NCBI RefSeq assembly: GCF_963676685.1
Contig: NC_092351.1
Location: 42,594,001 to 42,658,000 of the forward strand
Source of the DNA: Mytilus edulis
Taxonomy: Eukaryota
Length of the DNA: 64,000 bases
Direction: 5' to 3'
Part shown: positions 837 through 33,655 of the stretch, one piece after another
Numbering within the stretch: the stretch's first letter is position 1
Layout of the letters: each line of letters starts with the position of its first letter
Translations under genes and position numbers: made by a program
The notes under the pieces: model-generated
Told to the model about the DNA's origin: nothing
Database searches by the model: none
What the model saw: only the letters and a program-made list of their open reading frames with translations

Positions 837-1227
837 GGATGTTTGCTCCTCCATTTTTTGATTTTTTGCCAGATTTTCGGAATCCTCTGGTTTTATCCAT
901 GTATTTTCATTAAAAAAAAAATTGCCCACTAACCCCTACTTTTCTTTTCATAATTTTATTTCATAAAGTTTAAAAAGCCATATTTCAAAATTTTATGAAA
1001 TTCTTGTTATTTTTTCATAGTTTTTGAAACAAAAAAGGTGCAATGTTAAATATATGAAAAATCTAGAGAGAATTATTTCCCGCCAAATTCTCAATGGCTT
1101 ATATCTCGAAAATGAGCACACGGACCCTCCATTTTTTTCTACTTTTTGAGTTTCTTTATTAATAGACTATCAATTCATTATAGTCTTTTAAAAAGCTTGT
1201 TATTTTTTAACAGAGTAGCGAACATCC
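837..1227. mobile_element. MITE with short TIRs and TTAA-like TSD (Kolobok-like non-autonomous element)
   Basis: Left end ggatgtttgctcctc and right end gagtagcgaacatcc are imperfect inverted repeats, flanked by TTAA (833-836) and CTAA (1228-1231). It interrupts a ggcaaactaa..ggaa.ggaaac motif that is uninterrupted at about 1740. GG...CC termini with TTAA are typical of Kolobok. Confidence 0.7.
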
Positions 1228-1351
1228 CTAAGGAATGGAAACGAAAAAAATCAGCATTTAAGGGATATAGTAACTCTACATTGTTTAAGTAACGCCACCA
1301 AAATTCAAACTCGACTTGTGTTTTGTGGTTATAAGCAGTGTGCATATAAAA

Positions 1352-1712
1352 AAGAAGATGTGGTATGATTGCCAAAGAAACAACTCTCCACAAGAGACCA
1401 AAATAACACAGAAATTAACAACTATAGATCATCGTACGGCCTTCAACAATGAGCAAAGTCCATACCGCATAGTCAGCAATAAAAGGCTCCGAAATGACAA
1501 TTTAAAACAATTCAAACGAGAAAACTTACGGCCTTATTTATATATGTGAAAAAAAGGAACGGAAAATAAATATGTAAGACATAAACAAACCACAACCACA
1601 GAATTACAGGCTCCCGACTTGGGACTGGCACATACATACATTATGTGGCGTGATCCCGTCCCTCCCCTAACCTGGTATAGTGGCATAAAAGTACAAGATA
1701 AGAACGAACTAT
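1352..1712 (+). repeat. Dispersed repeat family A
   Basis: aagatgtggtatgattgcc...ggccttcaacaatgagcaaag...ggctcccgacttgggactggc; homologous copies at 26570, 28678-29452 (minus) and 32952. Confidence 0.85.
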
Positions 1713-2859
1713 AATAATAGGTTTTATAATATTTGGTTGAGGCAAACTAAAGTAACGGAACGGAAACATACATTGGGATGTACAGACGGACAAGGGTAAA
1801 ATGTAATGCCCACCTTCGCTTGGACCGGAGGTATAGACATGTTAATTTATTGTAATTTCTGACAAACAATAAATTGATCTAAATGCTAATCATCTACATG
1901 TGAATTTACAAATGATTAAAGAGATTTGAAAGGTACTCTCAAATTCTCAAGTAGAAATAAACCAAAAACACCATAGCAAAACATGGAATGGAAATGCTCC
2001 CCATGTGCCACCCGTCGTATTGCTCAAAGTGGTAATTTTGATTAATTATGAAAAGAGGACGCGAATTTGGTTAAGAAAATTTAAATTTGAGATAACATGG
2101 TTACTAAAGCTTGAACACAGGAGTGAAAATTTGTTTGGGTCACTCTCAGGGATGGTTATCAACTTATATGCAATGAAATTCTATATGAAATTTTGTATGT
2201 AATACTAGACAGGATGAAACTCTTCTCACAACAAGTATCTTTTTAATTTGCAAAATTTTTGAAAATGCAGATAAAGGAAAACAATTGAAGTAGTATATCC
2301 CAAGGACATCATGATATAAAATGCAAGCTCTAGAAGTTTTGAGACGAAAACTATGCAAGAAAAAAAGGTTTGGTGCCATTGATTTCTTTGGAGCCATTGA
2401 TTTCTTTGGAGCCAAAATTCTATTGCATATACATTTTCCGTAACACTTAATATTTTGACATAGTTTTGACATCACAAATAACTAATCAAAATTGTATTTC
2501 AAATGAATATCTAAATGAACAAATAAATGAATGTTGTAAATTTTAAGAGTCTAATAACGATTACCGCGAAAAATAAATAAACCAATGTAGATTTTGTCTT
2601 GCTGATAATTATTGTCCATCTTTTATAGTTATAATTATAACAGAACAAAACCCCAAAAATTTTTAAAAAACCTCATCATTTAGGCCAATTATTCCATTGA
2701 GAAGTTGATTGAAGATTTTGGCAATGTTTTACTAATTTATAGATATTGTCTTGTTGATCATTTTGACTTCATAAAGTTTCGGTCTATCAAAGTTTTCAAA
2801 ATAATAAGCTAAACTTTGTAAATTGATTATGGTAAACATTGGTTCTTATTAGCAAAGAA

Positions 2860-2965
2860 GAGTCTCGCTACATTGAAGACCTGTTGGTGACCCTCTGCTG
2901 TTGTTTTTTATTTGGTCGGGTTGTTGTCTCTTTGACACATTCCCCATTTCCATTCTCAATTTTAT
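2860..2965 (+). repeat. Fragment of dispersed repeat family B
   Basis: cattgaagacctgttggtgacc...gtctctttgacacattccccatttcc; its reverse complement is present at 19943-20290. Confidence 0.8.
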
Positions 2966-3040
2966 TGAAGAGAAGAAACTTAAATATGTTAAGATTTACA
3001 TAATTGTAACTATTTTTGAAACTATATGTTTATCCTTTTT

Positions 3041-4681
3041 TAGCTCAACTGGCCCAAAGGGCCAAGTGAGCTTTTCTCATCACTTGGCGTCCGGCGTCCG
3101 TCGTCGTCGTCGTCCTGCGTCCGGCGTTAACTTTTACAAAAATCTTCTCCTCTGAAACTACTAGGCCAAATTTAACCAAACTTGGCCACAATCATCATTG
3201 GGGTATCTAGTTTAAAAATTGTGTCCGGTGACCCCGCCAACTAACCAAGATGGCCGCCATGGCTATAAATAGAACATAGGGGTAAAATGCAGTTTTTGGC
3301 TTATAACTCAAAAACCAAAGCATTTAGGGCAAATCTGACAGGGGTAATATTGTTAATCAGGTTAAGATCTATCTGCCCTGAAATTTTCAGATGAATCTGA
3401 CATTCCGTTGTTAGGTTGCTGCCCCTGAATTGGTAATTTTAAGGAAATTTTGTTGTTTTTGGTTATTATCTTGAATATTATTTCAGATAGAGATAAACTG
3501 TAAAAGCAATAATGTTCAGCAAAGTAAGATCTACAAATAAGTCAACATGACCAAAATGATCAGTTGACCACTTTAGGAGTTATTGCCCTTTATAGTCAAT
3601 TTTTAACCATTTTTCGTAAATCTTAGTAATCTTTTAGAAAAATCTTCTCCTCTGAAACTGCTGGGCCAAATTATTTGAAACTTGGCCACAATCATCATTG
3701 GGGTATCTAGTTTAAAAATTGTGTCCGGTGACCCCGCCAACTAACCAAGATGACCGCCATGGCTATAAATAGAACATAGGGGTAAAATGCAGTTTTTGGC
3801 TTATAACTCAAAAACCAAAGCATTTAGAGCAAATCTGACATTGGGTAAAATTGTTAATCAGGTGAAGATCTATCTGCCCTGAAATTTTCAGATGAATTGG
3901 ACAACCTGTTTTTGGGTTGCGGCCCCTGAATTGGTAATTTTAAGGAAATTTTGCTGTTTTTGGTTATTATATTGAATATTATTATAGATATATATAGGTA
4001 AACTGTAAACAGCAATAATGTTCAGCAAGGTCAGATTTACAAATAAGTCAACATGACCAAAATGGTCAGTTGACCTCTTTAGGAGTTATTGCCCTTAAAA
4101 GTCAATTTTTAACCATTTTTCGTAAATTTTATATATCTTTTACTAAAATCTTCTTCTCTGAAATGCTGTGCCAAATTGATCCAAACTTGGCCACAATCAT
4201 CTTTGGGGTTTCTTGTTTAAAAAATGTGTCCGGTGACCTGGCCATCAAACCAAGATGGCCGCCACGGCTAAAAATAGAACATAGGGGTAAAATGCAGTTT
4301 TTGGCTTATAACTCAAAAACCAAATAATTTAGAGAAAATCTGACATGAAGTAAAATTGTTAATCAGGTCAAGATCTATCTGCCCTGAAATTTTCAGATGA
4401 ATTGGACAACCTGTTTTTGGGTTGCGGCCCCTGAATTGGTAATTTTAAGGAAATTTTGCTGTTTTTGGTTATTATATTGAATATTATTATAGATATAGGT
4501 AAACTGTAAACAGCAATAATGTTCAGCAAAGTAAGATCTACAAATAAGTCAACATGAACGAAATGGTCAATTGACCCCTGTAGGAGTTATTGACCTTTGT
4601 AGTCAATTTTCAATCTGCTTCCTTTGTTTAATATTCACATAGACCAAGGTGAGCGACACAGGCTCTTTAGAGCCTCTAGTT
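3041..4681 (+). mobile_element. Helentron-associated non-autonomous element (HINE/pearl-like) carrying about 3 tandem ~500-bp repeats
   Basis: 5' subterminal inverted repeat agctca...tgagct, a (gtc)n microsatellite, tandem units starting at about 3141, 3641 and 4147 (aatcttctcctctgaaac), a 3' hairpin ggctctttagagcc, and T-rich flanks without a TSD. Confidence 0.85.
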
Positions 4682-4700
4682 ACTTATTTATACTTTTCAG

Positions 4701-6143
4701 GCAAATACTTGATGCAATTGCAGATAAAGAAACAAGACATGTTTCGACTACTCGCTCTTTTCATCAAACAAACAACACAACTAGACGGGATGCAGTCAAA
4801 TAATGTTGCCAGTTTCTTACACAATTCGCCTTCTTCTCGTGTATCATTTTTACCGTCACCAACTACAAACTTCAATATATCATTTCCGTTTATTCGTGTC
4901 ACCAACGCTCCCGTCCCAATGTCTAAGAGAACGTATGCTCCTAATGTTTGAAAACCATCAACGCTCATCATTAGAAGAACTGTTTCGCAGTAGAGGGAAG
5001 CAGGGAGATAGTACCGACAAATTATCAAGGGGAACCTGAGGGCATTGTCATCAAGACGGACATTGTCATTAGTCCGTTCAACCCCAGGAAGGCATGCCAT
5101 CGCCAATACTATCTTAAGCCAACCAGCGACAGAGGCAAGCGATGCCAGATCGACTACGACGAGGGATTTGACCTAGATTATCCCAAGTTGGTCCAGATAC
5201 CACCACACACATCGCCACTGGTGATGTCATCTCCAGAGGCAGTAACAACAGCAATGATGATCTTGGAACGGCCAGATACACCTTACCACACTCCTCGATG
5301 TAAAGTTAAAGCTAATCGGTCAACTGAAGCAGACTACACAATAGGTAGAAGTTAGTCCGCAATATCTAGACAGGATAGCCGGACTGACAAATCTTCATAT
5401 CACCTATCCCCATTAACTAACATTTTGATATGGCTTGTATTACACTCCTTTTCCCAGACTTTCCTGAGCAAATGTCTGTTTTATACAAAGACGCATCATT
5501 GTAAATAGATACAACAACAATTACTTTATGAACTGGTCAACAGAACAACTAGATCAGGCAAAGATATGTGCCATAACAAGACCTCTTAAGTCACTCACGG
5601 AATCTTCTTACAAAGAAAATATCAAGAAAAATGAAGTAACAAGGAACAAGAAATTGGCATTCTGTATGGCACATGATCCAGAACCATGGGCTACACAATT
5701 TGTAACAGATGTATCATCTGGTTCAATTAGAAGTACAACAAAAGCAAAATATGCTGCCACCATCCTATGGTGGCAGCACTCAAACTCCTACGACAGTAAG
5801 AGGCCCGTACAAGTACCATCCCAGGAAGCTAGACATGTTGTAAAGAGGAAGAGGAAGTCAACAGAGACTGAATAGAATATAGAGAAGGGTGTCAGAAATT
5901 CCATTCTCAGAAGAAATAGACGACACCAATGCTGATGAAACAGCAGCTATCACAGCAATGTCTATAAAAAATTCCCTTAAGTATACCATGAGTCTAGGAA
6001 AGAAAGAACTAAAAGAAAAGAAAGAAGAAAATAAAGACTTTGTAGAATTGCTTGGACAGTATGGTGGCATAAGGACAAAAACAACAGAAGACTTAATACT
6101 TTCCTTGATGACAATTGCAGTGTATCACCATTTAAACATGTGA
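4701..6143 (+). pseudogene. Decayed coding-like sequence of unknown family
   Basis: GC-richer island starting after an acceptor-like ttttcag. ORFs 4649-4951 and 5528-5875 share a frame with intervening stops, and 5889-6143 follows in another frame. No domain recognised. Confidence 0.35.
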
Positions 6144-16560: not shown

Positions 16561-17786
16561 ATATCTTTTGTCCAAAACATGGTATGAAATAAAGTTTCTT
16601 GATCACTATATAAAAAAAAAACGTTTTCCCATAACATAGTTTCTGTTTCTTTAGCAATTCTTAATACTGTTGAATTTGATATCTGGAAGTAGATAACTAG
16701 TTCATCCATTAATTTCAGAATACTTTTGAATATAAGTTATGTAGTAGGTGGTTTCCTGTGATAAGGAAAAACACTAACAAGAGCTAAGGTTCTGATGTTT
16801 ATTATAAATTACTAGCAATTTTAAATTACATAAGTATGGACACTTTTACGAAATATCACAGATTTTATATTACAGAAATATAATATAAATATAATAAATA
16901 ATCCATTTAACTGTAACTAAGTATCAAGTGAAATGTATTACAGATAAAAATGTTCAATGTTTAGTGATTGAAATTGACATCAGAGTCATGTGTACTTTTA
17001 CATTTGGCTTGACTTGAAATCCACAATATTTGGAATGTGATCCGTAATTGATGTGTATCTGTGCATGTATTTTTCAGTTATGGGTTGTTTGCTTGTGAGA
17101 AAGCTTTCACATGTTTATTTTATCTTGGTATTTAATTTTTATTGTTTATTCAATATTACGGCGTTTCGATGTATTAATACTCATCCACGCCTGCTACTTT
17201 TTATTATTGCCCCCCCTGCTATGGTTTTACCAAGATTTCTAACAACCTCTGTTTTTGCCCTGTGTTTGTTATATGTCAGTCTTGTTATATTTAAGTCTTT
17301 ACGTCGGGCCTTTTATAATATTTTTTGTAAGATTCAATGTTACAACCTCCGGTCTATATATTGTTCCCTATTTATAATCATGATTTTACGGAATGGAAAA
17401 TATTATTAACAGCAAAATTTCTAGGTTATCTACGTGCATAAATAAAACAATTTGTAATGCCACTACAGTCAGATTATTTAACAAAAAAACACGTGGATAT
17501 CCACAAATGTTCCCGTGCAATGCCAAAAATGACTATAAAAAAGATGTGATATGACTGTTCTCAAAATACTATAAGTTCAACAGTGAACGGGAGAACATTT
17601 TGTCTCTCCTTTTTCTGTGATATTACCTGAAAAACTCTAAACCTGATATATGTGGTTACTTGAACCCAATCTAAGTGTGGTATTCAATATGTGGGACCGA
17701 CGGGACGAGAGTATTACAGAAGAAATCAAGAACATCTCTGCCGCTTTCGTAGACCCAAAAAATTCAAAAGTTTAGTATATCAACAT

Positions 17787-18087
17787 ACAATTTAATTTTG
17801 GATGTAACGCGTCTTCTGATTGGCTGACGTTATTTTGTTATCAGCCCTTAAACATAATGTAGACGTGTGACCGTGACGTCAACAACGTTTTTTCATTGTT
17901 TTTAAGGTTTAAAATGAAATTTAGAATTAAATTATAAGAAATGACTAATATTGTTTCTGTCTATTCGAATTAACATAAAAATGTGGTGCACACTGTTAAA
18001 TAACCCGCTACGCCCGTTATTCAGTGTGCACCAAATTTTTTATGTTATTTCGTCATAGACAGAAAAAATATTACAGTCATTCCTTAA
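17787..18087. mobile_element. ~300-bp insertion ending in a ~150-bp hairpin, no clear TSD
   Basis: Removing it restores the reading frame YQH-LDKHNH of the host element. Inverted arms ...ggtgcacactg..aataac / gttattcagtgtgcacc... span about 17934-18086. Confidence 0.75.
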
Positions 18088-18455
18088 TTAGATAAGCATA
18101 ATCACAATCTTAAATATATAAAATTGCAACCCCTGGAAACCGGCCAGAAAAACCAGGAGAATCACACAAGCAATTTAAAAAATCACGCGAAGTTCGCGAA
18201 TTAATTTGGATAAAAAGACTTCAAACAGCTTCTCCTCTCGGTTTCAATGACAAAATATTAGGACAGGGGTACATATCTAAAACTTCTATCGATGTCATTT
18301 ACATTGTTGATAAACGACTTGAAAATAGTAGGTCTCATGGTCAACGCAATACCGTAATCAGCGTACTAAACACCGTATAAATTATACTCTTGCTGCTCTG
18401 TTACCTATAATAAAAAATAATGGTTAACATCTAGTATTATGTAAACTGGGTCAGG

Positions 18456-19035
18456 TGGTCCGAGACCACAATTGTTGTGCCTTGATTTTCGTTGTTTCGA
18501 ATATAGTTCCTAGTGTTGACAGTGGGTTACCTGCCATTTATTTGTATACCCCTTCCAAAATTTATTTCTCCATGTTTAATATCTCAAATTGCAAGTAGGG
18601 GGTTGAAATCACACTGTAAAAAAAATTGGGTTTAGAATTTTAAAGAAAAGTAGTTATTTGGTCCAGCTGAAAAAAGGTTAAAAATTAGCACTTCGGAAGC
18701 TGTCAAAAGATTTCAAGACGCCCTAAACATAAAATTGTCCATATTTTGAGTTAGAGCCGATGGAGTTTTATATAATTTTGATATAACTTGTCCCAAATAT
18801 AGTACAACACACTGTAAAAATTTCATTGAGAAAGCACAGGTGGGATTTTTTATATTTTCATTTATGTTCTAATAGTTATCAAAGGTACCAGGATTATAAT
18901 TTAGTACGCCAGACGCGCGTTTCGTCTACATAAGACTCATCAGTGACGCTCATATCAAAATATTTATAAAGCCAAACAATTACAAAAAGAATTTCTAAAA
19001 GAAATGCACTACGGAATAATTGTGGTCTCGGACCA
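18456..19035. mobile_element. MITE with 18-bp TIRs, carrying a nested family C repeat
   Basis: tggtccgagaccacaatt (18456) and aattgtggtctcggacca (ends 19035). Removal restores approximately LCKLGQ-IPISKV in the Naiad ORF. Confidence 0.85.
18906..18949 (-). ncRNA. Minimal type I hammerhead ribozyme
   Basis: Minus strand reads GCGUCA-CUGAUGA-GUCU(UAUGU)AGAC-GAAA-CGCGCG-UC-UGGCGU, with a palindromic stem III ACGCGCGU. Confidence 0.9.
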
Positions 19036-19942
19036 GATACCAATAAGTAAAGTATATTCTATTTTTCTGGAGTGTGAGAAAATTTCTTTCTTTAGCCCGT
19101 TTTATGAATACACCCGTATTATTATCACAGACTATTTCCTAGTATTGATGAACCTGAAACGACATTTTCTTAAAATAAAATATGTAGAAAGAGGGTATTG
19201 ATTTTATTAACTTGTCTAGCATATTCAACGACTCCTCCGTCTACAGCTTAATACCTCCATATTTTGATAATCTAGAACCACCAATTATTTCATATTCTTA
19301 TAAAAAAAAAAACCGAGAAGTTTTTAATTATACGCCAGTTACATCACACGTCAATATAGAAAATCATGTTCCTTCCACTTAAGACTGCGATACATCTAGT
19401 TTTAAATATGTTCCCTATGGTCATATTATTACAGGAGACCTCAACATTGTCGAAGACTGTGAGGTCAACACTTGTCTAAAGAAAGGACCAAAATACCGTC
19501 CTCCATCTATAATAGATTGAAAACAGTGTCGGCAGGTCATTAAAGACGCTCTGTCTGCCTAGTGTAAAAATTGGTGCAAACGTGAAAAATCTGATAAACA
19601 ATCTCTAGACAGTTATTTAAATAAAATTATGAATACAGCTAATATACGAATATCTCATTTAGAAAACAATTCTGAAATTAATAATAAGATCCATTATATT
19701 CCCATTTCTAGAATAAAAAATAAACTCCAAGTACTCGCAGAGCCGTTTGTGTTCGTACCGGCAGACAAGACAGCCACTAATGCAGGGGTGGTGTGACGTA
19801 TATACTACACGGAAGTTCTTCAAAACGAAATTATCAATTCCTCTACATTCAGGTCCGTACGCACCACAGAGAGTCAAATCGTTTACAAGCTTATCACTGC
19901 CACTACCCAGCTTAAAGCCTCTTCCGAACATTTGAAAGTCCA

Positions 19943-20290
19943 TAAAATGGGGAATGTGTCAAAGAGACTACAACCCGACCATAGAACAGACAACAGCAGG
20001 AGGTCACTAACAGGTCTTGAATGAAGCGAGAGATTCCCGCATCCGCAGGCGTCCTTAAGCTGCCCCCTAAACAAATATATATACTAGTTCAGTGATAGTG
20101 AACGCCATACTAAACTCAAAATTGTACACAAGAAACTAAAATTAAAAAAAAATCACGACTAACAAAGTCCAGAGGCTCATGACTTGGGTCAGGCGCAAAA
20201 ATGCGGCGGGGTTAAACATGTTTATGAGATCTCAACTCTCCCCCTATACATGAACATCTAGCCAATGTAGAAAAGTAAACGCATATAACA
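19943..20290 (-). repeat. Dispersed repeat family B
   Basis: Reverse complement of 2860-2965 plus the tgacttgggtcaggc...gcggggttaaac core. Confidence 0.8.
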
Positions 20291-26400: not shown

Positions 26401-26569
26401 TCTCTTCGATTCAATCATTACCTGTTTTGGGGAATTTTTTCTTGGTTCACATAATGGAAGGGCAGACACGATAATTTCTGAACTAAAAGATTAATATGTT
26501 CTCCGTCCGTGATAAAAAAAAATCGGAGGATATGCATTTTCTACATCCAACTTATAGATACTATATATA

Positions 26570-26715
26570 AAAAAGATGTGGTATTATTGCCAATGAGACA
26601 ACTATCCAGAAAAGACCAAAATGACACAAACATTAACAACTATAGGTAACCGTAAGGCCTTCAACAATGAGCAAAGCCTATACCGCATAGTCAGCTATAA
26701 AAGGCCCCGATAAGA
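26570..26715 (+). repeat. Family A fragment nested in the inner transposon
   Basis: aagatgtggtattattgccaatgagacaac...aaaaggccccg. Confidence 0.85.
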
Positions 26716-28677: not shown

Positions 28678-29452
28678 AACTGTCAGTAACTGCGAGTACT
28701 CTCAAATCGTATTTTCTTGTTAATTCGACCTGTTGATACTGTTTATAATGCTTTTTTGTTATTTTTTATTTATATGGATCTTGTCTGTACACCAGCTTTG
28801 ATTATTTGTAATATCTTCAATTTTTCACTTATTCTTACATTTGTATAAACTTCAAGATTATAAAAAAACCGGTTTTTTTTCTAAAGTGAACATTGATTGG
28901 TTAAATATTTCTCAGTCATGTCCTGTGTTTGAATTTGTTTGTTAGCTTTTTGGTCATGAATGTTTGTCTCTAATATTTAATTAACTGTGCATTTGTATTC
29001 AGATATCGCAGATCAAATTTAATCGTTCATTGTTTAATCGTAGGTTTTTTGATTGAGTTAAGTCTGCCAATTGATATTTCATCGTATGTTTTTCTTTGTT
29101 GTGATGTTATGCTATTATTTCAGAAAAAGGGAGAAGGTTTGGATCCATTAAAACGTTTAATCCCGCTGCAAATGTTTGCACCTGTCCTAAGTCAGGAATC
29201 TGATGTACAGTAGTTGTCGTTTGTTTATGTAATATATACGTGTTTCTCGTTTTGTTTATATAGATTAGACCGTTGGTTTTCCCGTTTGAATGGTTTTACA
29301 CTAGTAATTTTGGGGCCCTTTATAGCTTGTTGTTCGGTGTGAGCCAAGGCTCCGTGTTGAAGGCCGTACTTTAACCTATAATGGTTTACTTTTTAAATTG
29401 TTATTTGTATGGAGAGTTGTCTCATTGGCACTCACACCACATCTTCCTATAT
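28678..29452 (-). repeat. Long variant of family A
   Basis: Ends gagagttgtctcattggcactcacaccacatcttcc and contains cctgtcctaagtcagg. Confidence 0.75.
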
Positions 29453-29594
29453 CTATGTACATCTGTCCAGTGCATATAACGTGTTGTTATTCTCATATGC
29501 ACATGATATTTGTCACTGGACGAAAAACCCTTATTCGTAAGCATCCTCCAATTGGTTCTTTATTTCTATTACTTAATCATATGTTGTTTACAAA

Positions 29595-32951: not shown

Positions 32952-33655
32952 AATGAAGATGTGGTATTATTGCCAATGAGACAACTCTCCACAAGAAACC
33001 AAAATGACAAAAAAAATAACGACTTTAGGTCACCGTTCGGCCTTTAACAATGAGCAAAGTCCATACCGTGTAGTCAGGTATAAAAGGCCACGTAATGACA
33101 ATGTTAAACATTTCAAACGAGAAAACTATTGTCCTAACTTCTGAACGAAAAACAAATTTGTAACACATAAACAAACGACAACCACTGAACTACAGGCTCC
33201 TGACTTGGGACAGGCACATACATAGACAATGGCGGGATTAAACATGTTTGCGGGATCCCCCTGACCTGGGACAGTAGTTTAACAGTACAACATAGGAACG
33301 AACTATAAAAATCTGTTGACAAGGCTTAACTCGTCAGATGGATAAAAATACAAATACTACAAACACAAGTGGACGTGGTCGGGTACTTGTACATCCCAAC
33401 AACAAAAAGACACTGTACAGATCTCAGAGTATTCGCAGTTTCTGACAGCTATTTCAAAGCCACTAACGGCTAATAAAAAAAATCATCGTCTAAGACTGAA
33501 TTATTAATCAGTACACATTCAACATCCAATGGATTTAGTGTACATACGTCTTTAAGAAGTCAGAGAAAAACACGACCTTGTGCAATGCCAAGATACAGGT
33601 ATCGACAGATTGAATATCCATGAATGTGTATATGCATATAACAATAACATTTATT
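32952..33655 (+). repeat. Long copy of family A
   Basis: gaagatgtggtattattgccaatgagacaactctcc...ggctcctgacttgggacaggc... Confidence 0.85.

Follow-up and report, generated by a model that had tools for sequence, protein, structure and literature searches.

The analysed window is a stretch of 64,000 nucleotides of the Mytilus edulis genome (GCF_963676685.1, contig NC_092351.1, positions 42,594,001 to 42,658,000, forward strand), and all window coordinates given below refer to it. Between positions 17042 and 19944 (+) it carries the decayed 5' part of a Naiad-type Penelope-like retroelement with 13 frameshifts, 9% substitutions and two foreign insertions. To define its parts, the window copy was aligned to L034, an intact copy of the same family found elsewhere in the genome. 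The 5' untranslated part (17042-17379, +) aligned to L034 (oriented) 700-1068 at about 80% identity with several indels. The first ORF segment (17380-17786, +) starts with the ATG at 17380 and corresponds to family codons 1-135; it encodes the N-terminal GIY-YIG endonuclease with the CX4[U]xxC and CCHH zinc-finger-like motifs and the GIY-YIG core, and six frameshifting indels lie between 17397 and 17556. The endonuclease is then split by a foreign insertion of 301 bp (17787-18087), which carries a long internal palindrome at 17946-18073, seen as three inverted repeats, and which is absent from all family copies, since positions 1473 and 1474 of L034 are adjacent. The second ORF segment (18088-18454, +; 88% identity to L034 1474-1842) encodes the C-terminal part of the endonuclease domain and is followed by a MITE-like insertion of 579 bp (18455-19033) with 38-nt terminal inverted repeats (arms at 18456-18493 and 18998-19035), flanked by a CAG on each side, which holds a hammerhead-like motif and is also absent from the family copies. 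The third ORF segment (19034-19944, +; 88% identity to L034 1840-2773) encodes the linker with the [U]xC motif and the N-terminus of the reverse transcriptase (RT) with the PADK motif. The copy ends abruptly at 19944, at about codon 569 of the 1001 family codons, and a tblastn search found no further RT anywhere in the window. A 3' fragment at 28680-29459 is 96% alike, against 88% for this copy, and was therefore taken to be a separate insertion.

The sequence-only reading had described this region as a decayed Naiad element with TGA codons at conserved cysteine positions, and this observation was confirmed: TGA is found at 17628, 17661, 19794 and 19518, TAA at 19380 and TAG at 19560, and the motifs read DIT[TGA]KTLNLIYVVT[TGA]TQSKCGIQYVG, ST[TAA]DC and PADKTATNAGVV[TGA]RIYY. 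The alignment to the intact copy revealed a fifth site, which had been missed because of a frameshift: the TGA at 17530-17532 (family codon 52) is at the second Cys of the CX4CxxC motif. The TGA at 17628-17630 (codon 83) is at the first Cys of the CCHH motif, a site that is UGA in the published clam Naiads (PMC8557442), and the TGA at 17661-17663 (codon 94) is at the Cys preceding GIY-YIG, which is UGA in all four published selenocysteine (Sec)-encoding Naiads. The TAA at 19380-19382 (codon 381), at the first Cys of the CxC linker motif, stands where the family has TGA, as had been guessed from its being one substitution away, and the TGA at 19794-19796 (codon 519) is at the Cys eight residues after the DKA/DKT motif. 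In contrast, TGA at 19518-19520, TAG at 19560 and TAA at 18425 are decay mutations of TGG (Trp), TAT and AGA, respectively.

The same genome holds a young family of this element of about 4.4 kb. The copy-level analysis rests on 20 extended loci, which are 98-99.7% alike and start at many different points of the element, plus genome-wide pattern counts. Three of the 20 copies (L034, L043 and L044) have a 1001-codon ORF without any frameshift and with no stop other than exactly five in-frame TGAs and the final TAA, and these three carry the last 410-680 nt of the element again just upstream, as partial tandem pseudo-LTRs; the 3' UTR amounts to about 1 kb. The domain organisation is that of the Naiad clade. 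A single ORF encodes an N-terminal endonuclease with the GIQYVG core at about codons 100-105 and the RT motifs downstream, and it aligned end to end with Naiad-like proteins of 900-1100 aa. The zinc-finger-like motifs read C-x4-[TGA]-x2-C and [TGA]...[TGA]-x4-C, the linker reads [TGA]-D-C at codons 381-383, with both columns being Cys in 9 of 9 homologues, and PADKAANN aligned with the ADKA motif of the homologues. A homology search with the RT returned 3366 homologues, but Pfam gave only a weak RVT_1 hit (E 0.012, below its cut-off) and no significant domain for the endonuclease or linker pieces. No hammerhead family was hit at E up to 1 in four family copies searched against Rfam; only SECIS_1 was hit.

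Next, we asked whether the position of the five TGAs could be due to chance. In an alignment with nine full-length Cys-encoding Naiads of 28-36% identity, only 11 columns were Cys in at least seven of the nine, and the five TGAs of the intact family ORF occupy five of these 11; the probability of that for random codons is 5.6e-11. Codon 52 is Cys in 8 of 9 and codons 83, 94, 381 and 519 are Cys in 9 of 9 homologues. The sequence-only reading had named three outcomes that would speak against it, TGT or TGC at these positions in the family, no enrichment of TGA at Cys columns and no SECIS element in full-length copies, and none of them was found. Codons were counted copy by copy rather than in a family consensus. 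TGA was present in 20 of 20 copies at codons 381 and 519 and in every copy that reaches codons 52 (8 copies), 83 and 94 (about 9-10 copies), and genome-wide there were 61 exact matches with TGA and none with TGT or TGC at codon 519. Across 80 related metagenome loci, 95 TGAs were found at the five Cys columns, whereas elsewhere in frame there were 11 TGAs and 10 TAA/TAG. The badly decayed window copy alone might suggest an assembly or sequencing artefact or a chance pattern, but this possibility is refuted by the 20 independent genomic copies, the 61 genome-wide matches and metagenome contigs that are 99% alike (L051 and L054). Furthermore, contigs of public runs under three organism labels cover the element, and none of the examined subset of differences falls on a TGA site.

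To see whether coding constraint continues beyond the TGAs, variants shared by two or more copies were analysed. There were 22 synonymous and 12 nonsynonymous variants, against 24% synonymous expected (p 6e-7), spread over all ORF segments between the TGAs, indicating purifying selection. This bears on the possibility that the TGAs are true stops, tolerated as nonsense mutations in a non-autonomous family that is copied in trans by Cys-encoding Naiads. In favour of it, the same genome and related metagenome loci do hold Cys-encoding relatives, and Penelope-like elements are often truncated and defective. However, an AT-rich 3-kb frame stays free of any other stop in three copies, all five stops are TGA and lie on conserved Cys columns, shared variants show purifying selection downstream of every TGA, and across a clade that diverges to about 45% identity these sites hold TGA, TGT or TGC in all but four observations. 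We therefore regard this explanation as highly improbable.

A search of four family copies against Rfam revealed SECIS_1 hits on the sense strand of the 3' UTR in three of them, in a hairpin with AUGA, AAA and GA that lies 135 nt after the UAA stop. The scores of 28-29 bits are below the curated threshold of 35, but one relative passes it with 38.8 bits. Across relatives the AUGA, AA and GA positions are invariant, 15 of 18 pairs show compensatory changes, and 91% of cells are paired against 41-48% in slid controls; 0 of 500 shuffles reached the observed values. A model built from these hairpins scored the family hairpin with 46 bits (E 5e-9) and found a hairpin in 28 of 30 loci that have TGA at a Cys column but in 0 of 9 loci where four or more sites are all Cys, an association that is not phylogenetically independent since all TGA loci form one clade. 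The distance of 135 nt is larger than the 0-57 nt seen in relatives, many of which have the hairpin overlapping or just after the stop, and than the 1-21 nt of the published families. The genome also carries tRNA-Sec genes (five matches at 77-80 bits, cut-off 47). Selection on codons downstream of the UGAs shows read-through but not the identity of the inserted residue, and the UGAs could thus be recoded without selenocysteine, for example by a near-cognate tRNA inserting Cys, Trp or Arg, with the hairpin having another role such as RNA stability or packaging; the sub-threshold score of the family hairpin counts in favour of this. But the hairpin keeps the AUGA, AA and GA signature of SECIS with covarying helices and appears only in lineages with TGA at Cys columns, the exchange of Cys for Sec at TGA is the classic selenoprotein signature, and the host has tRNA-Sec; this explanation is considered unlikely. 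Evidence for expression is sparse: the public runs that hold the element are only guessed to be RNA, their depth profile rises toward the 3' end, as 5'-truncated DNA copies would give, and only a small-RNA run gave real RNA reads, of about 30 nt and at low depth.

Searches of the literature for Sec-encoding transposons or mussel Sec-Naiads found only the 2021 study of Craig et al. (PMC8557442), which described four families, two from clams and two from spiders. The clam families, Naiad_Mmer of Mercenaria mercenaria and Naiad_Scon of Sinonovacula constricta, are the same element type, with an N-terminal GIY-YIG endonuclease, a CxC linker and an RT in one ORF and a type-I SECIS in the 3' UTR, and have UGA at the sites that correspond to codons 83, 94 and 519. 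According to their published description they have three or four UGAs, against five in the mussel family; of the two extra sites, the first Cys of the CxC linker is not reported as UGA in that paper and the second Cys of CX4CxxC is reported only in a spider. In our RT tree every TGA-bearing locus falls in one supported clade. As a proxy for the clam families we used L071, a locus that shares a 90% protein cluster with a Mercenaria protein and has the published TGA 7 nt before its SECIS; it lies within this clade, in the sister subclade (SH-aLRT 99), with an RT identity to the mussel family of only about 49-53%. The families of Stegodyphus spiders (Naiad_Sdum and Naiad_Smim), judged in the paper to be of independent origin in arthropods, have several UGAs at zinc-finger cysteines, including the CX2-5CxxC motif, the Cys before GIY-YIG and the Cys after DKA, and a SECIS just after the stop; by description, the first Cys, or the first and second Cys, of CX2-5CxxC is UGA there, whereas in the mussel family only the second is. 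Cys-encoding Naiads of bivalves and other invertebrates, such as Penelope-2_CGi of oysters, share domain order, motifs, 5' truncation, pseudo-LTRs and high copy number, and no canonical hammerhead ribozyme was hit in the mussel family, but they have TGT or TGC at all five sites and no SECIS (0 of the 9 all-Cys loci). The paper notes a 5-residue insert in CX2-5CxxC in mussels, which the two Mytilus families found here lack.

In sum, the window holds a dead, 3'-truncated and twice-interrupted Naiad copy that inherited all five TGAs, keeps four and has mutated the fifth to TAA, and whose intact relatives would require decoding of five in-frame UGA codons as selenocysteine. In this view, which we hold with high confidence, decoding would be directed by one type-I-like SECIS hairpin using the tRNA-Sec machinery of the host. 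The interpretation given in the sequence-only reading, descent from a multi-Sec element, possibly in a further bivalve lineage, is thus supported, Mytilus being a lineage beyond the published clams. The anatomy of the element, the fixation of TGA, the homology of its positions to Cys, the selection on the ORF, the structure and covariation of the SECIS, its association with TGA and the presence of tRNA-Sec genes are demonstrated by the sequence data, whereas the actual insertion of selenocysteine and its service in the zinc-finger-like motifs are inferred, without direct evidence of translation or of selenium in the protein. Five UGAs served by one SECIS would demand processive recoding. This is plausible in bivalves, whose selenoprotein P, a protein with many Sec residues made by processive UGA recoding, is cited as the most Sec-rich known (PMC8557442). 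Selenoprotein P is a host protein without sequence or functional relation to the element. It typically has two SECIS elements.

These findings place selenoprotein-encoding transposable elements in an economically and ecologically important genus with chromosome-level assemblies, raise the count to five Sec per protein, on the inference that all five UGAs are decoded as Sec, and add two Sec positions for bivalves. Gene callers cut these ORFs at every UGA or read them with code 4, so such elements are mis-annotated in databases; database proteins were found that end exactly at the Sec columns or show W there, and that these are TGA codons is inferred. The trait sits in a clade where close relatives differ only by Cys or Sec at defined metal-binding positions, a natural experiment on why Sec replaces Cys. 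Selenoprotein-encoding Naiads may even form one large radiation in marine bivalves in which five or more zinc-finger cysteines have flipped between Cys and Sec many times, with a minimum of 21 state changes on the RT tree and mosaics from one to six UGAs, and with at least two families currently or very recently active in Mytilus, one of which has 100% identical copies and thousands of first-look candidates; we consider this only slightly more likely than not. Their retrotransposition would scatter very many SECIS hairpins through the genome, which could seed new host selenoproteins, and a genome carrying so many mobile SECIS hairpins is a place to look for newly born selenoproteins, an idea raised in PMC8557442.

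The sequence-only reading had placed TGA codons at 17628, 17661, 19794 and 19518, a TAA at 19380 and a TAG in this stretch, and all of these codons were found where it had put them, with the TAG at 19560. The frame reads as it had described, DIT[TGA]KTLNLIYVVT[TGA]TQSKCGIQYVG, ST[TAA]DC and PADKTATNAGVV[TGA]RIYY; the observation therefore holds. To find out what the copy is, we searched its own genome (1.37 Gb, with large contigs numbered up to C14 that measure 71–126 Mb) at the DNA level, which gave 619 first-look candidates, of which 40 were scored, and 20 extended loci were retrieved. These 20 loci are 98–99.7% alike over up to 4.4 kb, with many different 5' truncation points. In three of them a partial copy of the 3' end sits just upstream, which is the pseudo-LTR arrangement of Penelope-like elements.

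Against an intact copy, the element in the window aligned in three blocks (17042-17786, 18088-18454 and 19034-19944) with an identity of 80–88%. The blocks are interrupted by two foreign pieces. The first is a 301-bp insertion at 17787-18087, which is absent from all family copies and has a nested palindrome at 17946-18073 with arms that are 94–95% complementary. The second, at 18455-19033, is a 579-bp MITE-like insertion with 38-nt terminal inverted repeats, flanked by CAG on both sides and containing a hammerhead-like motif. The copy stops at 19944, and no further RT was found anywhere in the window. It carries 13 frameshifting indels, 9% substitutions and three decay stops, TAA at 18425 from AGA, TGA at 19518 from TGG and TAG at 19560 from TAT, and is a dead fragment; the sequence-only reading had also called the copy decayed. 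A 780-bp fragment at 28680-29459 (+) is 96% identical to the last 780 nt of the same family (4314-5096 of the intact genomic copy L034) and starts downstream of the SECIS. It lies inside a nested-transposon region and looks like a separate, younger, heavily 5'-truncated insertion and not like the missing 3' end of the studied copy. Further matches of 68–72% identity to the last 300 nt or so of the family's 3' UTR were found at 1343-1637, 26539-26708 and 32955-33258, all on the minus strand; they are probably 3' ends of other Penelope-like families that share a conserved tail.

In the oriented copy L034, the ORF runs from 1069 to 4074, which is 1001 codons plus TAA, and its only in-frame stops are five TGAs, at codons 52, 83, 94, 381 and 519. 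L034 and two other genomic copies, L043 and L044, have no frameshift and no other stop, whereas the other copies have one to a few defects each. Codons were counted copy by copy: TGA was present in 20 of 20 copies at codons 381 and 519, and in every copy that reaches codons 52, 83 and 94. An exact 27-mer around codon 519 occurs 61 times genome-wide with TGA and never with TGT or TGC. The window copy keeps the TGAs at 17628, 17661 and 19794 and, in addition, one at 17530 (codon 52), which the sequence-only reading had missed because of a frameshift. At 19380 it has TAA where the family has TGA.

Next, we asked whether the TGA columns are cysteines in homologues. A profile-free search with the endonuclease piece retrieved full-length, stop-free Naiad-like proteins of 892–1105 aa and one of 653 aa, at 28–36% identity. 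In a MAFFT alignment, all five TGA columns are Cys in 8–9 of those 9 proteins. Only 11 of the 1001 columns are that conserved for Cys, and the chance that five random codons all land on them is 5.6e-11. The sites are the second Cys of CX4CxxC, the first Cys of CCHH, the Cys before GIY-YIG, the first Cys of the CxC linker and the Cys eight residues after DKA. The middle two endonuclease sites and the DKA site are the ones reported as UGA by Craig et al. 2021 in the clams Mercenaria mercenaria and Sinonovacula constricta (PMC8557442).

To test whether the ORF is under coding constraint through the TGAs, variants between the copies were analysed. Variants shared by two or more copies were inherited from active lineages; they are 22 synonymous to 12 nonsynonymous, where 24% synonymous is expected (p 6e-7), and they occur in every segment between the TGAs. 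Singletons, which are mostly post-insertion mutations, are close to neutral at 35% synonymous.

A scan of four family copies against Rfam gave SECIS_1 as the only family hit at E up to 1, and three of the four were hit. The hit is on the sense strand, starts 135 nt after the TAA and scores 28–29 bits, below the curated cut-off of 35. The hairpin region is nearly identical in all 20 copies, with single-base differences in a few, but this says little in copies that are so alike. Therefore, 80 related loci at 31–99% protein identity were retrieved from metagenome contigs. In equal-sized Rfam scans, SECIS_1 hit 18 of 39 loci near the Mytilus family, every time on the sense strand and beginning 0–57 nt after the ORF stop, and one hit reached 38.8 bits, above the cut-off; 0 of 20 distant loci were hit. 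A MAFFT alignment of 16 hairpins keeps the TGA of the AUGA core, two A's of the apical loop and the 3' GAT invariant. With helix I, helix II and the apical mini-stem specified, 91.4% of cells pair, against 68% in shuffles and 41–48% when the partners are slid, 15 of 18 pairs have compensatory double changes, and 0 of 500 shuffles reach any observed measure. A covariance model built from this alignment found a hairpin in 28 of 30 loci that have at least one TGA at the five columns and at least 120 nt of 3' flank, but in only 2 of 27 loci where only Cys was seen. Both of those show only one site and are close relatives of TGA families, and none was found in 9 loci where four or more sites are all Cys. 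Fisher's p is 1e-11, although the loci are not phylogenetically independent. Applied to the whole genome, the model matched at least 150 places at 64–78 bits, on all large contigs; the genome therefore carries very many transposon-borne SECIS hairpins.

The 90% cluster of the family's RT piece contains proteins named Mytilus edulis and Mytilus californianus, which supports a Mytilus host at the genus level. The genome has five tRNA-Sec matches at 77–80 bits, against a cut-off of 47; four of them, with identical scores, lie within 560 kb on contig C7 (C7:74815896-75374462) and one on C1 (C1:49149863). Separately, a tandem array of near-threshold tRNA-like hits (45.9 bits), spaced about 895 bp apart, was found at C10:14401393-14442259. 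Contigs of public runs under three organism labels cover the element, and none of the differences examined, which leave out 96 others, falls on a TGA site. A small-RNA library gave sparse reads of about 30 nt on both strands, which is weak evidence of transcription. On L043, these reads start and end at fixed points, with sense reads over the SECIS region (4246-4308, +) and antisense reads in the 3' UTR (4640-4890, -), and their sizes are piRNA-like. Taken together, the sequence-only interpretation, that this copy descends from a multi-Sec element, possibly in a further bivalve lineage, is supported: the open frame, the fixation of TGA at Cys columns, the constraint on the ORF, the covarying hairpin and the tRNA-Sec genes are shown here, whereas the insertion of selenocysteine at these codons is inferred from them.

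At the five columns, the 80 loci hold TGA, TGT or TGC, apart from four observations that are probably misaligned. Within the aligned frames there are 95 TGAs at these columns, 11 TGAs elsewhere and 10 TAA/TAG, none of which lie at these columns. With U for TGA (predicted Sec) and C for Cys at codons 52, 83, 94, 381 and 519, in that order, the states form a mosaic: UUUUU in the Mytilus family and in a second lineage at 47% identity, UUUCU, CUUUU, CUUCU, which is the published clam pattern, CUCCU, CCUCU and CCCCU, and CCCCC in the distant loci. Some relatives carry extra in-frame TGAs. One is shared by the metagenome loci L072 and L074 (aligned to family codon 921) at a column that is Asp in the Mytilus family, one in locus L094 lies at another conserved Cys column, codon 881, and locus L073 has a sixth TGA.

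The UUUCU pattern belongs to a second predicted Sec-Naiad family in the same genome, represented by the metagenome loci L056-L058. It is present at 100% identity over 1440 nt in at least 40 scored places (e.g. C14:21696207-21697646), with 3514 first-look candidates, and has a roughly 1000-codon ORF with four TGAs (CxC stays Cys) and no other stop. In protein it is about 62–68% identical to the first family, and it looks more abundant and younger than the family of the window. Two other lineages tested, L094 and L073, are not in this genome. Many database ORFs end exactly before codon 381, among them sixty ORF fragments, or begin just after codon 519, and some predicted proteins in public collections, such as P0063, P0086, P0095, P0165 and P0224 in our numbering, show Trp exactly at the Sec columns. 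This fits gene callers that stop at TGA or read it with code 4, an inference drawn from the protein records alone, and Sec-Naiads thus appear to be widely mis-annotated.

To see how the TGA-bearing loci are related, a quick maximum-likelihood tree of the RT part was built, leaving out the Sec columns. All TGA-bearing loci fall in one clade of 42 rows (SH-aLRT 99), with the all-Cys loci outside it. The clade has two subclades, each supported at 98, of which one holds the Mytilus family and the other the metagenome locus L071. The protein cluster of L071 includes a Mercenaria mercenaria protein, and L071 also shows the published peculiarity of Naiad_Mmer, a TGA 7 nt before the SECIS. The minimum state changes are 2, 3, 3, 9 and 4 for the five sites.

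Selenoprotein-encoding Naiads are known from one paper, in two clams and two spiders with three or four UGAs (PMC8557442). Mytilus Naiads are listed there but not as selenoproteins, and it was predicted that more cases had been overlooked in bivalves; our literature searches found no later report. New here are the mussel host, five UGAs, a UGA at the CxC linker Cys, a UGA at the second Cys of CX2-5CxxC in a bivalve, and the mosaic across one clade. Although the tree is a quick one and the metagenome contigs have no assigned host, the distribution of states suggests one origin shared with the clam families, followed by many Cys/Sec flips.
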